In this document: positions 3,947 to 16,160 of the stretch, in pieces | Layout: the number at the start of each line of letters is the position of its first letter | Numbering within the stretch: position 1 is the first letter of the stretch | Source: Oikopleura dioica | Taxonomy: Eukaryota > Animalia > Chordata | DNA: 64,000 nucleotides | Assembly (NCBI GenBank): GCA_907165135.1 | Contig: OU015566.1 | Span: 9,796,001 to 9,860,000, forward strand | Reading direction: 5' to 3' | Notes under the pieces: model-generated | The model's database searches: none | What the model was told of the DNA's origin: nothing | Seen by the model: only the letters and a program-made list of their open reading frames with translations | Position numbers and translations under genes: made by a program

Positions 3947-6900
3947 ATGGTCTGGTTGAAGGAAGAAATTGCCTCGAAAAAGATTCTTGTCGTCGGAGCA
4001 GGTGGAATCGGATGCGAACTCTTGAAAAACTTGATTCTTGCAGGTTAATAAGTTTCAATTCTACTTTTAGCTAACTATTTTTTCAAGGCTTTTCTAATCT
4101 TACTGTAATCGATTTGGACACAATTGACGTTTCTAATCTCAACCGACAGTTTCTCTTCCAAAAGCAACATGTCGGCAAATCAAAATCGCTCATCGCAAAA
4201 GAGTCAGTCATGAAATTAACTCATGAGGGCCGCGAAGTCACCATCGATGCTCGAATGTGTTCCATTTTTCTTCCCGAGTTCAGGGCGGTTTTCAAAATGA
4301 AATTACTGGTAGTTTGATAGTTCAAATAACGCATGTTATGATCTTGTTTTCTAAAAACCTGGCATCAGCGTCCCGTGGATAAAACAATTTTCAATTATTC
4401 TCAATGCTCTTTGAAGGGATCCTAGCTTCTGCTGAATCTCCCACTTCTAGCGTAGTTTGCCTGCTCTCTATATCTGGACGAGTGAAGAAAACGAGTAAAG
4501 TATCTTTGACGTCTGTATTTCGAGCTGGAGTAAAATAGAGGTTAATTCACGAACTGCGTGAATTACCGAATTGAGAGAAATACACGGCGGCGACCGAGCA
4601 AAGCTCGATCTAGATAAGCAAGTGACCTTAGGGGACGAGGGAGTCTAACGAATCTAAGATCCCAATACCCCCCATGAGACTGAAACGTCCTCTAAGGCCA
4701 AAGTGTGTGATTTTTGCAGGAGTATAAGCGTAAGATGAGTAACATGGCAGGTTCGAAACGTCGAGGCAGTCTGATTCGCGTTAAAAAACCCTTTTTTGGG
4801 AAAAAGCTTGAATCAGATGCGAAGTTTTCGTGATGTCCGAGCGGTGATGACATGAAGGAGTAGCTGCACATGTAGAAGAACTCAAAATACGTCGGCGACG
4901 GTAAACTGTGATAATTTCCGTACCTTTTCAGGCCCCGGTCGATGAATAGGGGACCTGAGTGGGGCAGTACTTGCGCTTAGTCGTATGACTGACCCGAGTT
5001 TGTGCCGATGTTTAGAGGTTCGACGGGCCTCGTTTCACGGTGTGCTCGTTTTGTATGTTTCGGGAGATGAGCTGCTCCAACTTCGGTTAAAGTCGCATTC
5101 GGATCGGCGCCGGCTGAGTATTGACGATCTGGTGAAGACTTTGGACGGGTTCTTTTCTTGCTGTTTTCAGTTGCTGAGCCCTCAACTACTGTTGAATTTT
5201 GTTTATCGACTGACATATGGCTATTGTCGGGCGCAGCAACCTCCGAAATCACTGTAGCATCAGCTGACATGTCCTCGGCAGTTTCATAAAGAGTACCACC
5301 AGAGTACCAGCGATCTGACGGCTCGGCTGGAGCTACCGACGAGTCCAAAATAGATGTAGCGGTTGTATCTCCCAGATTTTCCATGTCCAATCGGCGTCTA
5401 CTTTCCAAAATAGGTGATAGAGATGATCTTGGCGGTTTTTCCATAGCAACCATCGGAGTCGACGCGACCTGAGAAGATTTCCTCCCCCCATGCGACTTCG
5501 ACCCGGACTTTTCCATCGGTTTGGAAGTAGGAACAGGCGATTTTTGTGGGACTTTCGACTTAACGATTTCGGTTAAATGTGGGAATACGTACTCGGCCTC
5601 GTAGTAATCAATCCAGCGTAAGTCGTGATTTCGTTCTGCGGCGTGAACCACGTGTTCTCGATGGATGAAATCACGTTGTCCTTTTTTATCTTCGACCATG
5701 ACGACCCAGTCGTTGCTCGAAACGGCTTTCAGGGGACCTACCCAGCGTTCCTTCTTGCTTTTAGCGTCGGTCAGGTTTTCTCGCTTAATGTACACGACAG
5801 CGCCAGCGGGGATTGGTCTCGGCTTAGGCTCGTTTTTCAGCCTGTGCTCCATGGCTCGGTCAGCAGCTTCCATCGCAGTTTTCACAATGGCTTCCGCCGA
5901 TTTCGCTAAAGCTCCAACATTGAGACCAAACACCTGAGGTGTTTCCGCTGTCATTTCTGCGCCAGTAGAGTGGGTGAAAGTACTTTTTCGGCCAAACCAA
6001 ACTTCTCGCGGTGAAATTTTCGTGCTTTTGTTTTTCACACTATTGAGCGCGCGCATCACGTGGGGAACGCAGTCGGCCCAAGTTTTTCGACCGGAAGATG
6101 AGTTGACCATGCAGAATAGACTGTTTTTGATAGTCCGATTCGCTCTTTCTGCGAAAGCGTTTGATTGAGGGTGAAATGCGGTACTTATTGTATGTTTTAT
6201 CTGGTTAAGCTTACACATTTCGTCAATCACGCTTGCGCAGAAGTGGGTACCTCTGTCACTGTGTAGATGTTTCGGCAAGAAATCCATGGGAAGGAAGACC
6301 TTGTAGATGAGCGCTTTTGCAGCGCAGATAGCAGTGTCGGACCGCGTCGGAATGCACCAAGTGTAGCGAGAGAAAGTGTCCGCCACCACCAAATAATACT
6401 TGAATCCGCCAGCGGGAGGCATACAAGCGAAATCGATCTGAATCGATTCGCCAGCTGTTTTTCCACGACGAAGGGTTCCAAGTGGCGGTTTGGTACGAGT
6501 TCCAGCAGATCCTTTTCTGCGTAGGCAAGGGACGCAGCTGTGGACGTAGTTAGAAACATCGTCTTGAAATGAAGGCCACCAAACGTCCTCTAATCGCTCT
6601 AAAGTCCGCGGCTCGCCCAGATGACCGGACAAGTCGTGAGCTAGAAAGAGAAAGTGACTTTTTACCGCTTCCGGTACCACCGCCCGCGCGCCAGATTTGA
6701 ATTGACACATCAAGCACCCGGTAGTGTTATCCAGGAACAGAGCTTTTTCCATCTTGAGTAGAGACGATTGTCGGTGGTCGGAGTCCTTCACCAGCGATTT
6801 TATGTCCAGTGGCTCCTTACCAGATTCCAGAAAAGTGATGATTGCACTCAGAGCAGAGTCCTCCCTTTGATAGTCCAGAATGTTATTATAATTCGCTGAC

Positions 6901-9900
6901 ACCAACGGAATCTCCATTGGCGCCGCGATAGCCTTGACGTTTACCTTATGTATCTTCACCTCTGATAAAGTGATTTTCTCCGGAAACTGATTTTCGTTCC
7001 AGAAAGGGACGAAGACACGTACTGGTGAATTCTTGTCGATTTCGTACTCGCGACCAACGGGAAACTCAGAGTCGTATCCAAGTGATTTGTCGTCCTCGCC
7101 AGGTCTGCGGCTCATAAAATCGGCGAATTGATTTTCTGATCCCTTGATGTAGACAATGTGAAAATCGAATTCTTCCAATCGGCTTTGCCATCGGCTTATT
7201 TTAGAATTCTTGAACTTCTTTTTGTGTAGGAAGATCAAAGATCTGTGGTCTGTGTGAATCTGAAAGAATCTACCTTTCAGGAGCTTTTCCAGTCGCTCGC
7301 AGCACCAGACAATGCTAAACATTTCCTTTTCTGAAGTGTTCCATTTTCTTTCAGCTTTGTTGAAGGTGTGGGAAATCGCGCTTACTAGGTGCACTCTCCC
7401 GCCATACTCTTGTAGCAGAACACCACCCGCTGCGTACAGGCTCGCGTCTGTGTAGAGGTGAAAAGACTCGTCAAAGTTAGGAAAGCTTATGACAGGAGTC
7501 TCGGAGAGTCGTCGTTGAATTTCCTTGAGCGCCAAATCCGCTTCTTTGGTCCACTTGAAACAATTTGTTTCGTTCGCCGAATTTCGAACATCGTTTATGG
7601 GTTTCATTCTGCTCGAGAAGCAACCGGATGAAATAGCTTCGCCCATTTTTGTTTCTAGAAAACCTCGGATCCAATTCAATGACCCGATTAATGAAGCTAA
7701 CTCCTTTTGGGAGCGTGGGGGTTTCATCTGACGAAGGGCGGAGACTTGCGCAGGGTCCGGTTTGATTCCTTCTTCGTTGATGATTCGGCCCAAAAAGTGA
7801 GCTTCTGATTGTAGGAAAGAGCACTTTTCGCCCTTGAGTTTAGCGTTAAACTTGCGGAGCGCGATGAATAGGTTTCGGAGAGTGTTGTAATAGCAGCTGA
7901 AAGACTTCCCAAAACATACTATGTCATCGATATAAGAAAGCATCTTCTTCCTGGTGGGGCTTGAGTCGAGAATCGTGTTTACGACGCGCGAGAATATATT
8001 CCCCGAGCATCGATAACCGAAAGGTAATCTGCAGAAGGCGTAAGATTTCCCACCCCACTGGAAGGAAGTCTTATACCTATCGCTTTTCTTAATAGGGCAC
8101 TGCCAATATCCGCTCCGCAAATCAACTGTGGCGAAATACTTGTTGCCCGGTCCAATGTTCGCGATCGTATCCTCCATGCTCGGAAGATGATATGGGTCGG
8201 ATTTGTCGGAGAGGCATTTGTTCAAGCTGTTCTTGTAGTTGATGCAGAAGCGCATTTCCCCAGATTTCTTAGGGATTGGCAGAACGGGGCTATTAAACCC
8301 TTTCTGGTCCTTGATCTCTTCTATTATTTTCGTATCGAGCAGTTCGGAGATGTGATCAGTGACCTGGCCATGAAAAGCTTGCGGAATAGGGTGTTGACTG
8401 ATGTTTCGACTCGTACCATCAGTCGGGATTTCGATCTCGAATGGGAATTCACCCATTTTTGACCGTCGCAGCCGAATCTGTCGTCGAAATCCAAACACAG
8501 CTCGGCGACCACCTTCTTTTGCCCCGGGTCGGCGTTTGCTGGTAGGGTAATTCCGAGTTTTTGCTTCGCTAGCTGAATGGGGCACCTGGCTGCGTTCTTG
8601 TTAGGTGCGTCCAGCTTTGGGACTTTTGGTGGCGGTTGAGTGCGGGATCGATCGCTATCCTTGACCGCTGATCTAGTAGTCAAGTATTTCTTGATTTTGG
8701 TCCGCTTCACTCCGTCCAGCTTCACCACTTGAGTCTCAGTTTGTGTGAAGGCTTCGTTGTAGCAAAATGAGAGAGTACGATTCTTATTGTCGACTGTGAA
8801 GCTGTCCGTCATCGCATTCTCTAGTATATCGCGGCCCAGTAGACTTGGGTATTTACTGCCTGGCATGATGGTGAGATTCAAGGAGAATGCAGGGCCACCA
8901 TTGAATGATAAGCGGCAGGGAAGGATACCCCTCGGCTGCTCGGCGGGGATATTTGGGCTGAAACCGGTGACCTTGAAGGGGCAGGGCTTCAGCATCTGGA
9001 GAAATTTGTCGGGAACGTAAGCAGCGGACAGACAGGAGGACTCGGCTCCGCTGTCGACTTCCATCGATACGTCAAAACTTTTAGAGCCCGTAATGATGGT
9101 AGCCGAAGCGAAATAAGCCTTTCCTGGTCGCTTCTTCTTCACTGTGTAAAAGTGAACATCGAATGGTTGGAAATCTTCGACGTTCTTAGTCGTATTAATC
9201 TTCTTGGATTCTGGTTGTTTATCGTCTTTCCCATCCTTAGAATCGGTGCTGGCGCGCTTAGCATTCTTCTTCTTTTTGTTCTTATTTCTGTTGAAGTGCT
9301 GGGAGACGGTCGCGCTGTCAACTCGATTCTGTCTTGTGGATTGGGCGAGACGGCAGAGTTCGTTGATATCGTAAACTTTTGATAGGCTTGGAAGGATTGC
9401 GTTGAAAACGTCTGGTTCTTCTTTCCTAAGATTCAAGTACAGCATCATCGTCGAGAATATGTCGAATATTTCATCGACCCCGGCGTCGGCTGACTTCTCT
9501 TGTCGGTAAGAGTTCAAAGTCGCTTGCTTCGCCTCGTTCATCTTTTGCAAGACGTTGGCGGTGTAGTGTGCAAACGGCTTCGAATGGTCGTATTCGACGT
9601 CGAAAACTTCGCTTAGCTTCAGTAAGTAGTGACTCTTCGCGGCGAATGATTTCTCTAGCAGCGCCTTGGCCGATTTCCAGTCTTGACAATTCAGAAATTC
9701 GGTTCCAAGTGAGCGTTCGATGTTCAAGTCGAAGTGGCTGTACACTGCTGCGATGAAAGGCTGTTCACGTGAAGGTCTGTCGCGGACGTAGGCGCGGTGA
9801 TAAATGTCGGCTCTGCCCAAGAAGGTGTTGAAAGATGTGTTGCATGCGGCGTCCAGCTTCGGCAAGTCTTGGACGTGACGAGACCAGGTAGTGGCCACCC

Positions 9901-12900
9901 ATGCTTCTTCTCTCATTGTAGCATTCGTAGATTCTTTTCCTTGATCGAGCTCGCAGGTAAGAAGCGTTGTACTGAGCTGTTCTAATTTTACTCTGCTTTC
10001 TGTGATCAAGGGCTCTAGGCTTGGCTTAAGTGATTCGTCATTTCGCACTTGTTCTTCGAGGTAGTTTACTCGATCGTTTATGCTTCTTATTTCGGTGACG
10101 GTTTCTAGCAGTGATTTGTTCGCCGCCATAGCTCGAAATATATCGGCAGTAAGGGTTTATGGGCCTTGGATTACCTTTCAGGCCCTCAGAAAATACTGCG
10201 ACTAAAAGTCGCAATATGATGAGCTGAGGTGCCTTTTGCGCAAACGCCCGACGATTTCTCTGTCCAGCGATTGTCGAAATTTCAAGGTCTGGTCCAAGGG
10301 TCGATTCTTCGTAAACTTCTCTCGATTTTTGGTGAAAAGTGGCGAAAGAATTCTGTTTTTCTGAGTATTTTAGGTTTTCCCCGGCGTGCGTGCGTGGTTG
10401 CGTGGGCGCGACTTTCGGCGCGTGGGTCGTGGTGGCGCTCGTGTGGTGGCGCTCGCTCGGGGTGGTGTTGGTGTGGTGCGGCGCGGAAAATTCTCTGAGT
10501 GGAGTTTCTCCGGCGGCGCGGTGGCGGTTGGTGATTCGGTTCCCCTCGACTCCGCTGACGGCCAATCAGCGTCCAAGTTGCGAAACTTCGGTTGTCGATG
10601 GCGGAAAATTTACCTTTTCTCCAACGGGACTACTCTGATACCACTGAAGGGATCCTAGCTTCTGCTGAATCTCCCACTTCTAGCGTAGTTTGCCTGCTCT
10701 CTATATCTGGACGAGTGAAGAAAACGAGTAAAGTATCTTTGACGTCTGTATTTCGAGCTGGAGTAAAATAGAGGTTAATTCACGAACTGCGTGAATTACC
10801 GAATTGAGAGAAATACACGGCGGCGACCGAGCAAAGCTCGATCTAGATAAGCAAGTGACCTTAGGGGACGAGGGAGTCTAACGAATCTAAGATCCCAATA
10901 TCTTGATAATGTATCGGCGCGCAATCATGTTAACAGGCTTGCACTCGCTGCTGACATCCCCCTTGTCGAATCTGGCACGGCTGGTTATTCTGGCGAGAGC
11001 TCAGTTATCAAAAAGGGGCTGAGCCCTTGTTACGAATGCTCGGTAACAACCAGGCTAGAAGATTCTATTTTCTTACCCATTTCTAGGAGCGCCCACGAAA
11101 CAAGACGTACCCTGGGTGCACCATCAGAAATACACCTTCAGAGCCAATTCACTGTATTGTTTGGGCTAAGTTCTTGTTCAGCCAGCTTTTCGGGGAACCA
11201 GACGATGAACAAGAAGTTTCACCAGACGCAGCCGACCCAGAACTTGCGGTAAGTCGACGTTCTCAGCGATAAAGGCGTAAATTATTATTAGAATGGGGAA
11301 AGCAGTGAAAATAGCGAAAACAAAGGGAACATCAAGCGAATCAATACGACAGTCTGGGCGGAAGAAAACGATTGGGATCCAAAACTTTATTCAACAAGTT
11401 TTTCAAAGAAGACATCAACTCTTTGCTGTCGATGAGCAAGCTTTGGGAAAAGGAAGGACGGAAGAAGCCTTCTGCGTTGGACTATGACGAGATCGTAAGC
11501 TTCATCAAAAGTATATTCAATCTTTATCTTATATTTCCGCAATTCTAATTGAATTAATTTATTACAAATCATCTTAGGTTGGCTGTGGAGATGGCCACGC
11601 TACCGGAAGTAAGATGCAGCTCAGAACTTTGAAAGAAAACGTAGCGGCTTGGCATAAAGCTGTCACAGATGTCAAGGTAACATTATTTTTCTTAAGTGTC
11701 CCAAATCAATCCAACTTCATTTCTCAGGAACGGCGAAAAAGAGATGGCCATCTTTCGTGGGACAAGGATGACACGGATGCAATGATGTTTGTCGCCGCTG
11801 CAGCGAACATCAGGTGCGGCATCTTCCAGATTGAACAAAAAACGGAATGGAAAGTGAAGGAGATGGCGGGTAACATCATTCCAGGTATTCGGCGCCTAAA
11901 TTCTGCAGAAAATAATCCTCATTTCTCAAGCGATTGCGACGGCAAACGCAGTAATTGCCGCTATCGTCTGCCTTCAAGCCGTAAAGGTGTTGAAAAACAA
12001 CATCAAAAAGACTCGAGAAGTATCTCTTCGTGTACAGCCAACACAACATTACATTCTCGCAGCTTCAACATTTGCCGATCGAAACGATAACTGTGTCGTC
12101 TGCGCGGAAAAGCCTACAGTCACAATCACGCTTGATACAAAAAAAGTAAAGTCGATTATGCTCGAAACTCGGGTTTTATTTGATCCTTTAGTTCACACTG
12201 AAAGATTTCCGCGAAAAAGTCTGCCAGAAAAAGCTGTCAATGCATGAGCCCGATGTGGAGATGGACGGAAACATCATCCTTTCCTCGGACGAAGATGATT
12301 TGGACGAGAACTTCTTGAAAAAGACTCTCAGCGAAGTTGGCGTGAATCATGGGGCTATTTTGACCGCGGAAGACTTTCAACAGGTATACATTTATTATCT
12401 TTACGAGTTTAAACGAAATTGAAGGAGTTCAAATTGGAGATCCACATCGAACACGCGGAGGAACTCCCCGAGATCGATGGACAAAACGACCAAGAGTTCC
12501 GAATCTCTGGCCAGGAAAAAGCGACTGCAACAATTACTGCCCAAGCCGAAGAAGTGGCAATTGGCAAGAAAAGAGCGCTTTCCTCACAAACGGAAAGCGA
12601 ACCCGCCGCGAAAGTTCAAAAGATCAGTAAGTCCACGGCCAATTTCAATAAGGAATAGAAATTCCAAATCCTAACTCCCCATGTTTTTGTGCTCGTTAGA
12701 AAGAGCGTAAAAAGTTTCGTCAGAAAAAAATAGTTTTAGGGGCTGAGTCATCATTAATGACGTCATGGTGGCTGGTTGAAGTTCCAAAAGTCCCAAACGT
12801 TGGGTCCCCTCTCATTTTTTTTCTAGAAATGGAAAATTTGAGTTCAATATATCAAAATGATCGCCTTGACCTACTCTAGGTGAAGAGCTATATATGAAAG

Positions 12901-13597: not shown

Positions 13598-16160
13598 ATG
13601 GATAATGAAATCGAACCAATGCCGGATCTCCATGAAATCATGATGTCGGACGAGTGGACTTCAGATGAATCCGGTGAATCTCTTCAGAGACGACCTCGGA
13701 AGAGGAGAAAAGTTATGCGCAATCGGGGACTTGAAAGTCCCCAAGGGGAGAAAAACTCCAGCATGCGCAAACTTTGCAAGAATAAAATGATATCCAGTTT
13801 CTCACATTTCCGAAGCGAGGGGATCTTGACTGACGTCGTGATTGTTGTTCCTGGATCTCCAGAAATAAACGCTCATAAAATTGTCCTAGCCGCTGCTAGT
13901 CCATTTTGAAACAATGTTCAAGGTAGGAGAAGTCTGAAAGAGGCTATGTGAACATAAATGTTAGTCTGGGATGCGCGAATCTACCTCAAACCGAGTTGAA
14001 ATGCCGGAAATTAACTACGAAACAGCTCTTTTGCTCGTTGAATTTGCCTATTGCGGCAAATATGAAATCAACACCGACAATGCCCAGAATTTGCTGGAAG
14101 CCGCTGACTGCTACCAGTTTCAGATGCTCAAAGAAAACTGCGAATCGTTTCTTCTTAATACAATTGAACTGTCTAACTGCTTCGTCCTCATGAAAATTGC
14201 CGAAGTTAGGTGTCTACCTCGTCTATCTGCTGCTGCTTTATCATTTGCTCTCAAAAACTTTGAATCAATCGCCAAGAGCAAGTCTTTTAAAGAGCTCTCA
14301 TTCACAGGTGTTGTTTATCGTGGTCTTCGTTATTCCTTTGTTTCTAGCGCTTGAAAGCTATCTGTCCGATGATGAACTGGTCTGCGGTCAAGAAGAGGCT
14401 GTATACAACGCGATTCTGACTTGGCTCCAATCTGATAAAAATGATCGCTCCAAATACGCATCAAAATTACTGAAATGCGTTCGACTCGGTCGCATCAACC
14501 CGCGTTTCATCTGGGATGTCATCGAGAAAGAATCTCTCTTCTCTGATGCTGACTGTCTACAATACATTCACTTTGCTAGCAAGTTCAAAATGCTTGGCAG
14601 TTCTGATCGTTCCAGTGAATTTGACGCAATCGGAAGGCCCCGAACATGCTCAGGTGAGCCGTGCAACAAAGTTGATACTCATCCGTATTTTTAGGCATTA
14701 CGCAAGCGATAGTCTTCGTAGGAGGCATTTCCGGTAACCAGAAACTGAACGAAGTTTTTGCGCTCATAAAGCCGCATGTTGTCCTTCATGATTTCACAGC
14801 AAAGCCGAAGTATGTTACACTGCCCAATATTTCAACGGACCATCTTCGACTTCACAGTTACTCGGTCTGTGAGAGCGACAATAATATTTACATCACTGGT
14901 GGACATTGTAGCATTGGAAATCAAGGATCCACGAGTGATCTCGTTTCCACTTATCAAGCTGGAGCCCATGACTGGAGCACACTACCAAAGATGCTTTCTG
15001 CTCGAGGTAAATTGCTCGCTCTTCGTTTGAAACTAAATTCTCCTTTAGAAAGACATGGAAGTGCTTTTGTCGATGGCATGCTTTATGTAGTTGGCGGTCT
15101 CATGGCTGGCAAGCAGAAAAAGCGTCCTTCTGTCCTTTCAAAAGTTGAAAAATATGATCCGAAATATATGCAGTGGTCAAAAGTAGCCGACCTTCCGAAA
15201 AAGTGCTACTCTCCTGGTGTCATCAGGTAGTTTTCTTAGTAAAGAATAAGTTGCCAATCAACTTCTTTTTTTAGCTACAAAGGAAAATTACACGTAATCG
15301 GCGGCGTATCGATGGTTGAAACCGCGGGTCCAAGACTCAATCAAACGGCGGCTTCGACTTCGGCTTCGAACATATCCATGCAAGATCCGACTTCGACTGG
15401 AAGCGTGACTAATTCAGTTGTCGGTGTGAATGCGGCTCAAGGATCGGCTCCTGGGACGTCTGGTACAGCAACTGGTGCTCAGACTCAACCATCGACTCCA
15501 AAGACTACGTCAACGAAAGCCGAACTTGAGTTCGTTCAAATATACTGCCCGAGAAAAGACGAATGGATAACTCGTAATATTGGACGTAAGCTGGCTAGAC
15601 TTGCATGCGCTTTGTACAAGGACTATGTTTACATCGTCTCCAACAATGTAAGTTCTAGTCTTCTTTTTGTTTCACTTCGGGTCTAGAGCAAGTCGATCTT
15701 CCGATACTGCCCGAACGAATACGTACTCGAGGAATGGCTCGTAATTGACAGAGAATTCCGCAAACTAGAATTCGCTGGTTTCGTTGCATATGGGGGCAAA
15801 TTGATTATAACTGGTGGCCAACGCGGTGATGACACTCTCAAGTGAGTTCCCAACAATCGACACTTATTCATTTCTTGTTATAGCCACGTCACAGTAATCG
15901 AGATCGAAACAAAGAAGATCGTCGGCACAACATTCGAATTACCGAAAGCAATGTGTATGCATGGATGTGTTCTCATCGAGCAACACTTGAAGACGCTTGA
16001 GAGCGCTTATAAAGAGAAAAATCATCGAGTTTCTTTGGTCGACCTTCCGCCAGGCTGGGAACTCAACTCGTCTGGACATCCACGTTATGTTGGAGGGCGA
16101 GGGCATGTGATTTTTAGGCGAAGGGAGGGCGAGATGGCCAATCCCGTCCTGAATCCATAG
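13598..16160 (+). CDS. BTB-BACK-Kelch (KLHL-family) protein; apparent frameshift at 13904-13907
   Basis: BTB (LTDVVIVV, AHKIVLAAASP, MRES, LLVEFAYCG, LLEAADCYQ), BACK (EEAVYNAILTWL, LLKCVRL) and Kelch repeats (YITGG, YVVGG, VEKYDP). Confidence 0.9.

Follow-up and report, generated by a model that had tools for sequence, protein, structure and literature searches.

A young Ty3/gypsy-type retrotransposon interrupts UBA2 in the Oikopleura dioica OKI2018_I69 reference assembly

We describe a retrotransposon insertion in UBA2, an essential gene of SUMO activation, within a 64,000-nucleotide stretch of the Oikopleura dioica genome (GenBank assembly GCA_907165135.1, contig OU015566.1, positions 9,796,001 to 9,860,000 of the forward strand; hereafter, the window, to whose first letter positions refer unless another sequence is named). 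Exon 3 of UBA2 is split by a 6,489-bp Ty3/gypsy-type long terminal repeat (LTR) retrotransposon at 4412-10900, whose coding strand is minus and thus antisense to UBA2. We think it most likely that the insertion is a heterozygous null allele, sheltered by an intact one, which arose from an active family resembling the Tor elements of this species and was kept when the haplotypes of the assembly were merged.

Results

The element carries the hallmarks of a single, recent integration event. Its LTRs lie in direct orientation, are 256 bp each and are the same at 256/256 bases, and immediately outside them stand the two copies of a TCTT target-site duplication (4408-4411 on the left, 10901-10904 on the right). 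When 4412-10900 and one TCTT are deleted in silico, the exon reads AAT GCT CTT GAT AAT, which encodes NALDN in frame. Both the perfect-frame restoration of this motif and the identity of the LTRs had been claimed in a first-pass annotation of the window and are borne out here, as is its assignment of the element to the gypsy group, which the pol order of reverse transcriptase, RNase H and integrase confirms. At position 4572, mirrored at 10805, both LTRs hold a base that occurs in no other LTR that we scored. A private base in both repeats points to a single reverse-transcription event and would not be expected from polishing noise.

Aligning the two exon halves to human SAE2, as UBA2 is also called, places the insertion within the NALDN motif, between Leu116 and Asp117 in the human numbering. 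We take Asp117 to lie at the Mg2+ site in the structure 1Y8Q, which is reportedly that of Lois and Lima from 2005. In the assembled sequence the first codon past NAL is a TGA inside the LTR, and the allele carrying the insertion would therefore be null. With exon 3 split, and with an apparent frame break in exon 5 that is taken up below, the UBA2 allele as assembled cannot encode the enzyme, from which we infer a loss of function.

The host gene has the features that define UBA2: a ThiF-type adenylation domain, the GxGxxG loop, the Asp of NALDN, a catalytic-cysteine domain and the UBA2-specific UbL domain PF14732 (12192-12389, 73 bits). When the exons were searched one at a time against solved structures, the best relative of every exon searched was human SAE2, and the pieces fell in the correct order (Table 1). 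As in the human protein (PDB 1Y8Q, 3KYC and others), NALDN, the CYEC zinc site, the catalytic-cysteine segment and UbL align in sequence; unlike it, the Oikopleura protein has a reduced variable region (290-334) and a reduced tail, and its gene is split here by the element.

An orthologue on a marine metagenome contig from another O. dioica lineage (L035), with 83% nucleotide identity in the UBA2 exons, shows the split exon 3 uninterrupted, which is the ancestral state. Over 179 codons the two genes differ by 80 synonymous-only versus 5 amino-acid-changing codons, and none of the 61 codons of the split exon has an amino-acid change. By this comparison the gene is clearly constrained, with purifying selection acting strongly on its coding sequence until today. 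The same orthologue lacks intron 2 of UBA2, a GG...AG intron that is single copy in this genome; its absence from L035 together with its single copy suggests that it was gained recently in this lineage alone, or else lost in that of L035. A repeated miniature transposon was considered as its origin and rejected because the intron occurs only once.

In exon 5, the conserved reading switches frame within a run of four A residues at 11381-11384, where L035 is continuous. The statement of the first-pass annotation that the rest of UBA2 reads intact thus holds for all exons except this one. Since single-base homopolymer differences are frequent among near-identical element copies of this Nanopore assembly, the break is probably an uncorrected Nanopore homopolymer error, and much likelier that than a second lesion. 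If UBA2 were dispensable or already dead, with a second copy left unassembled or an older null in place before the insertion, both the insertion and the exon 5 break would be real lesions. The break is the sole point in favor of this idea, and it falls in a homopolymer, the type of error seen throughout the repeats of the assembly. The codon comparison with L035, the lack of other stops in any exon and the lack of a paralogue in the assembly also speak against it, and we regard it as very unlikely.

Genome searches covered the assembly of 64,281,565 bases in 19 sequences. The PF14732 profile matched only the locus described here, the proteins of two exons matched only themselves, and the flanks of the element (612 bp on the left, 696 bp on the right) are both single copy. 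By these searches the assembly contains neither a second UBA2 nor an empty-site haplotig, and the option of a second UBA2 copy, which had been raised in the first-pass annotation, is excluded for this assembly. Neither PF14732 nor the UBA2 exon proteins match the other loci with ThiF domains, which are therefore different E1-type enzymes. UBA2 lies on C4, which is the autosome chr1, and the gene was thus diploid in the sequenced male; a sex-linked, and hence hemizygous, locus is rejected on the same assignment. The empty-site allele of the Okinawa lineage has no exact match in JGI metagenomes, where we found only the diverged orthologue on L035. The supplement of the OKI2018_I69 genome paper mentions neither UBA2 nor SUMO.

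Between the LTRs, all long reading frames are on the minus strand. The pol protein contains RVT_1 (residues 104-267), RT_RNaseH (370-473), Integrase_H2C2 (637-692) and rve (712-806); the reverse transcriptase motif YIDD is encoded at about 7923-7934, and both an integrase zinc finger and an integrase core are present in the pol part. The gag-protease part (8324-10129) gave no Pfam match and has no CCHC knuckle. Only 310 bp separate the end of pol (4977) from the LTR (4667), and an env-like third gene is absent. The element is thus a complete Ty3/gypsy-type LTR retrotransposon that consists of gag-pol alone, without room for env. A 16-mer spanning the junction of LTR and putative primer-binding site was also compared with the genome, and none of the eight extra matches inspected was a tRNA gene. 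All eight are further copies of the family, and they were rejected as sources of the tRNA primer.

The element belongs to a large family of near-identical copies. Its LTR has at least 42 matches in the genome, almost all of them to full-length LTRs with 99-100% identity, and the junction 16-mer occurs 39 times, giving about 39 copies that bear internal sequence. We compared 18 of these in detail, counting differences from column-wise majority states. In all 18 the LTR pair is identical and the 4-bp duplication perfect, and the duplications share no common sequence; perfect duplications in every copy compared must be products of integrase and not of chance. A subfamily of 10 copies differs by 0-6 internal substitutions, and 7 further copies are up to 1.3% away. 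Gag-pol forms a single frame of 1726 codons in 6/18 copies, while the frame of the UBA2 copy is broken once and reads as 610 + 1207 codons. At 56-59% identity, the closest recorded proteins come from O. dioica, where they are unnamed, and from marine metagenomes. As identity to Atlantic O. dioica proteins is no higher than this, the family appears to belong to the Okinawa lineage. The number of near-identical copies, their identical LTR pairs and their perfect duplications record a recent burst, in strong support of the earlier suggestion that the family is or was recently active.

The copy in UBA2 is itself a mosaic. Over the pol part (4668-8678) it agrees with the main subfamily; over gag and the leader (8867-10613) it agrees with a subtype found in two or three other copies. 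The mosaic could be due to template switching between co-packaged RNAs or to mis-assignment of reads in the assembly. Elsewhere, at L053 (C1:6279000-6288900), fragments of the family LTR lie in opposite orientations within 600 bp (6283777-6284383), in what looks like a nested or rearranged insertion.

Could the element have been misplaced into UBA2 by reads mis-joined through a 40-copy repeat? The OKI2018_I69 Nanopore reads have a median length of just 840 bp (PMC8008620), the element is a near-identical repeat with about 39 copies, and its interior in UBA2 combines two subtypes and contains homopolymer indels, a pattern that poor polishing or mis-assigned reads would give. However, at the outer junctions stand the halves of a single exon and a perfect duplication of 4 bp, which a mis-join would not make, both LTRs hold the private base described above, and the UBA2 flanks are found nowhere else in the assembly. 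We therefore judge an artefact of this kind to be highly improbable.

In 4/18 copies other than that in UBA2 (5/18 with UBA2; Table 1), the insertion site is reached by an open frame that encodes a recognizable Pfam domain. Open frames of 100 or more codons cross 13/18 insertion sites, versus 48% of random sites drawn from the window. The insertion sites of the family are thus no less coding-like than random sites in a very gene-dense genome, which implies that too little time has passed for selection to clear the insertions.

Table 1. Features of UBA2 and of the inserted element, insertion sites of other family copies, and main sequences of the assembly. Coordinates are window positions unless another sequence is named.
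Feature	Position or length	Strand	Evidence or description
UBA2 exon 1, start codon and GxGxxG nucleotide-binding loop	3947-4043	+	frame MVWLKEE..., GT donor 4044; ThiF match C4:9799962-9800048
UBA2 exon 2	4088-4283	+	human SAE2 residues 40-85, E 7e-16; ThiF Pfam match
UBA2 intron 2, 85 nt, non-canonical GG...AG, TCAG direct repeat at flanks	4284-4368	+	L035 joins 4283 to 4369 (BLASTN)
UBA2 exon 3, left half, ends ...NAL	4369-4411	+	frame reading
LTR, 3' in element orientation	4412-4667	-	100% match to 10645-10900
Polypurine-tract-like G-run, directly upstream of 3' LTR	4668-4675	-	minus-strand reading ...CATGGGGGG, then LTR start TATTGGG
pol frame, 1202 codons	4977-8585	-	Pfam RVT_1, RT_RNaseH, Integrase_H2C2, rve, in that order
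gag-protease frame, 601 codons, overlaps pol frame	8324-10129	-	protease-like DSGA about 9044-9055
gag-pol frame break, single, T-run between protease and reverse transcriptase	8450-8460 (near 8455)	-	copy comparison
Primer-binding-site-like sequence starting TGGTATCAGAG, one base past 5' LTR	10625-10643	-	position
LTR, 5' in element orientation; minus-strand reading ends CA	10645-10900	-	LTR pair comparison
UBA2 exon 3, right half, begins at Mg-ATP Asp (DN...CYEC)	10905-11042	+	SAE2 116-161, E 5e-17; ThiF Pfam match
UBA2 exon 4, catalytic-cysteine segment IHCIVWAK conserved	11087-11248	+	SAE2 164-216, E 5e-25
UBA2 exon 5, apparent 1-nt frame break at A-run 11381-11384	11292-11493	+	three-frame reading; SAE2 253-289 downstream of break
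UBA2 remaining exons: end of SCCH domain, second adenylation-domain half, UbL, C-terminal tail, stop	11578-12658	+	SAE2 335-392, 384-470, 462-528
7tm_2 receptor frame	L050, PAR about 7.39 Mb		frame reaches insertion site
EML-type beta-propeller frame	L042, chr1 about 11.89 Mb		frame reaches insertion site
Short-chain dehydrogenase domain, first residues	L038, chr2 about 10.10 Mb		frame reaches insertion site
tRNA-binding (EMAPII-like) domain exon, split mid-domain	L049, C2 X-specific scaffold about 59-65.5 kb, site L049:500/6987		LEQIECGE / DKPRTVISGLV
C1	17,092,476 bases		PAR
C2	12,959,145 bases		XSR
C3	2,916,375 bases		YSR
C4	14,533,022 bases		chr1
C5	16,158,756 bases		chr2

Downstream of UBA2, the next gene (13598-14694) encodes BTB and BACK domains of the Kelch-like family and looks ordinary.

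Discussion

How can an animal carry an element in the middle of its only UBA2 gene? The reference derives from a single male of the 47th generation in a culture started with wild animals, and its heterozygosity was about 3.6% (PMC8008620). HaploMerger2 merged the haplotypes of a 99.3-Mb draft and sorted them into a "reference" and an "allelic" set, which brought the assembly down to 64.3 Mb (PMC8008620). We propose that an active, env-less, Tor-like family of Ty3/gypsy-type elements inserts at near-random sites, and that a very recent germline insertion would have disabled one allele of the single-copy, autosomal UBA2 gene. The outbred, diploid male would have carried this insertion over an intact allele, and haplotype merging would then have retained the insertion-bearing haplotype and dropped the intact one. 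By default, HaploMerger2 keeps the longer allele, which would favor insertion-bearing haplotypes in the reference.

The Tor elements of O. dioica provide a close parallel. In full-length Tor copies the two LTRs are nearly identical and the duplications measure 4-5 bp (Henriet et al. 2015, PMC4402516). An individual insertion is confined to one haplotype, occurs in less than 5% of animals and has never been seen in the homozygous state, from which the authors concluded that Tor turnover is under strong purifying selection (PMC4402516). The family described here shares with Tor the host species complex, a 4-bp duplication, near-identical LTRs, many young copies and open frames in several of them. 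It differs in that it has no env-like frame and encodes gag-pol as one 1726-codon frame. Since an env-like third gene occurs in many but not all Tor groups, and Tor elements without env are on record (PMC4402516), its lack is no bar to Tor membership. Of the options offered by the first-pass annotation, a heterozygous null fits best with these data: the locus is on autosomal chr1, the male was outbred and its haplotypes were merged, and Tor insertions are hemizygous and rare (PMC4402516).

It is also conceivable that the insertion was homozygous or the sole allele, and that UBA2 was rescued in the RNA, the tolerant spliceosome of Oikopleura taking out most of the element as a non-canonical intron. 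Non-canonical introns make up about 11% of those in this genome, and intron 2 of UBA2, only 43 nt upstream of the insertion, is itself GG-AG and lineage-specific. Two GA...AG pairs, which share a donor at 4413 and have their acceptor before 10852 or before 10873, would yield messages without stops that stay in frame and retain LDN. However, these messages would add 11 or 18 foreign residues just ahead of the Asp that binds Mg, within the adenylation-fold core, and the intron would be 6.4 kb long in a genome where the median is 49 bp. No homozygous Tor insertion has been reported (PMC4402516). Exact splicing-out of the element was tried and rejected, since the five possible exact introns start with T or C and end with A, C or T, and none fits the G...AG rule. 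Bypass in the RNA, another option of the earlier annotation, thus finds no support in the sequence, and we give a rescue of this kind hardly any credence.

A male with no intact UBA2 at all could in principle have reached maturity, either because GA...AG splicing of the whole antisense element produces an enzyme that works despite a short insertion or because maternal supply or another E1 permits maturation. We consider such a male barely credible. If it did exist, it would mean maturation without zygotic SUMO E1, or the splicing of a whole antisense LTR retrotransposon from an exon.

Three points weigh against a sheltered heterozygous null. We infer the heterozygosity of the insertion and have not seen it. 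The exon 5 frame break, if real, would put two lesions on one allele, which is unexpected for a very young null. Finally, the copy that splits the tRNA-binding-domain exon lies on the X-specific scaffold, where it would have no sheltering second allele in this male unless that end of the scaffold is pseudo-autosomal. Not every insertion of the family would then be sheltered by a second allele, and the tRNA-binding-domain gene may tolerate its insertion.

Insertional nulls caused by LTR retrotransposons are familiar from gypsy-induced mutations in Drosophila and IAP insertions in the mouse. The UBA2 insertion resembles them in being a recent, polymorphic, full-length element within a gene, with recessive loss of function, if it is the heterozygous null that we propose. 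It differs from them in two ways: the exon that it hits codes for part of an essential, single-copy enzyme, and the insertion is visible only through a reference made from one wild-derived animal.

For users of OKI2018_I69, the UBA2 gene model is broken by a private insertion, and should be read neither as gene loss nor as an odd gene structure. The insertion leaves our knowledge of SUMO activation unchanged. Its interest lies instead with the family, whose roughly 39 env-less copies apparently spread before selection filtered their insertions. The family should therefore lend itself well to measurements of transposition rate and recessive load in a chordate with a very compact genome.

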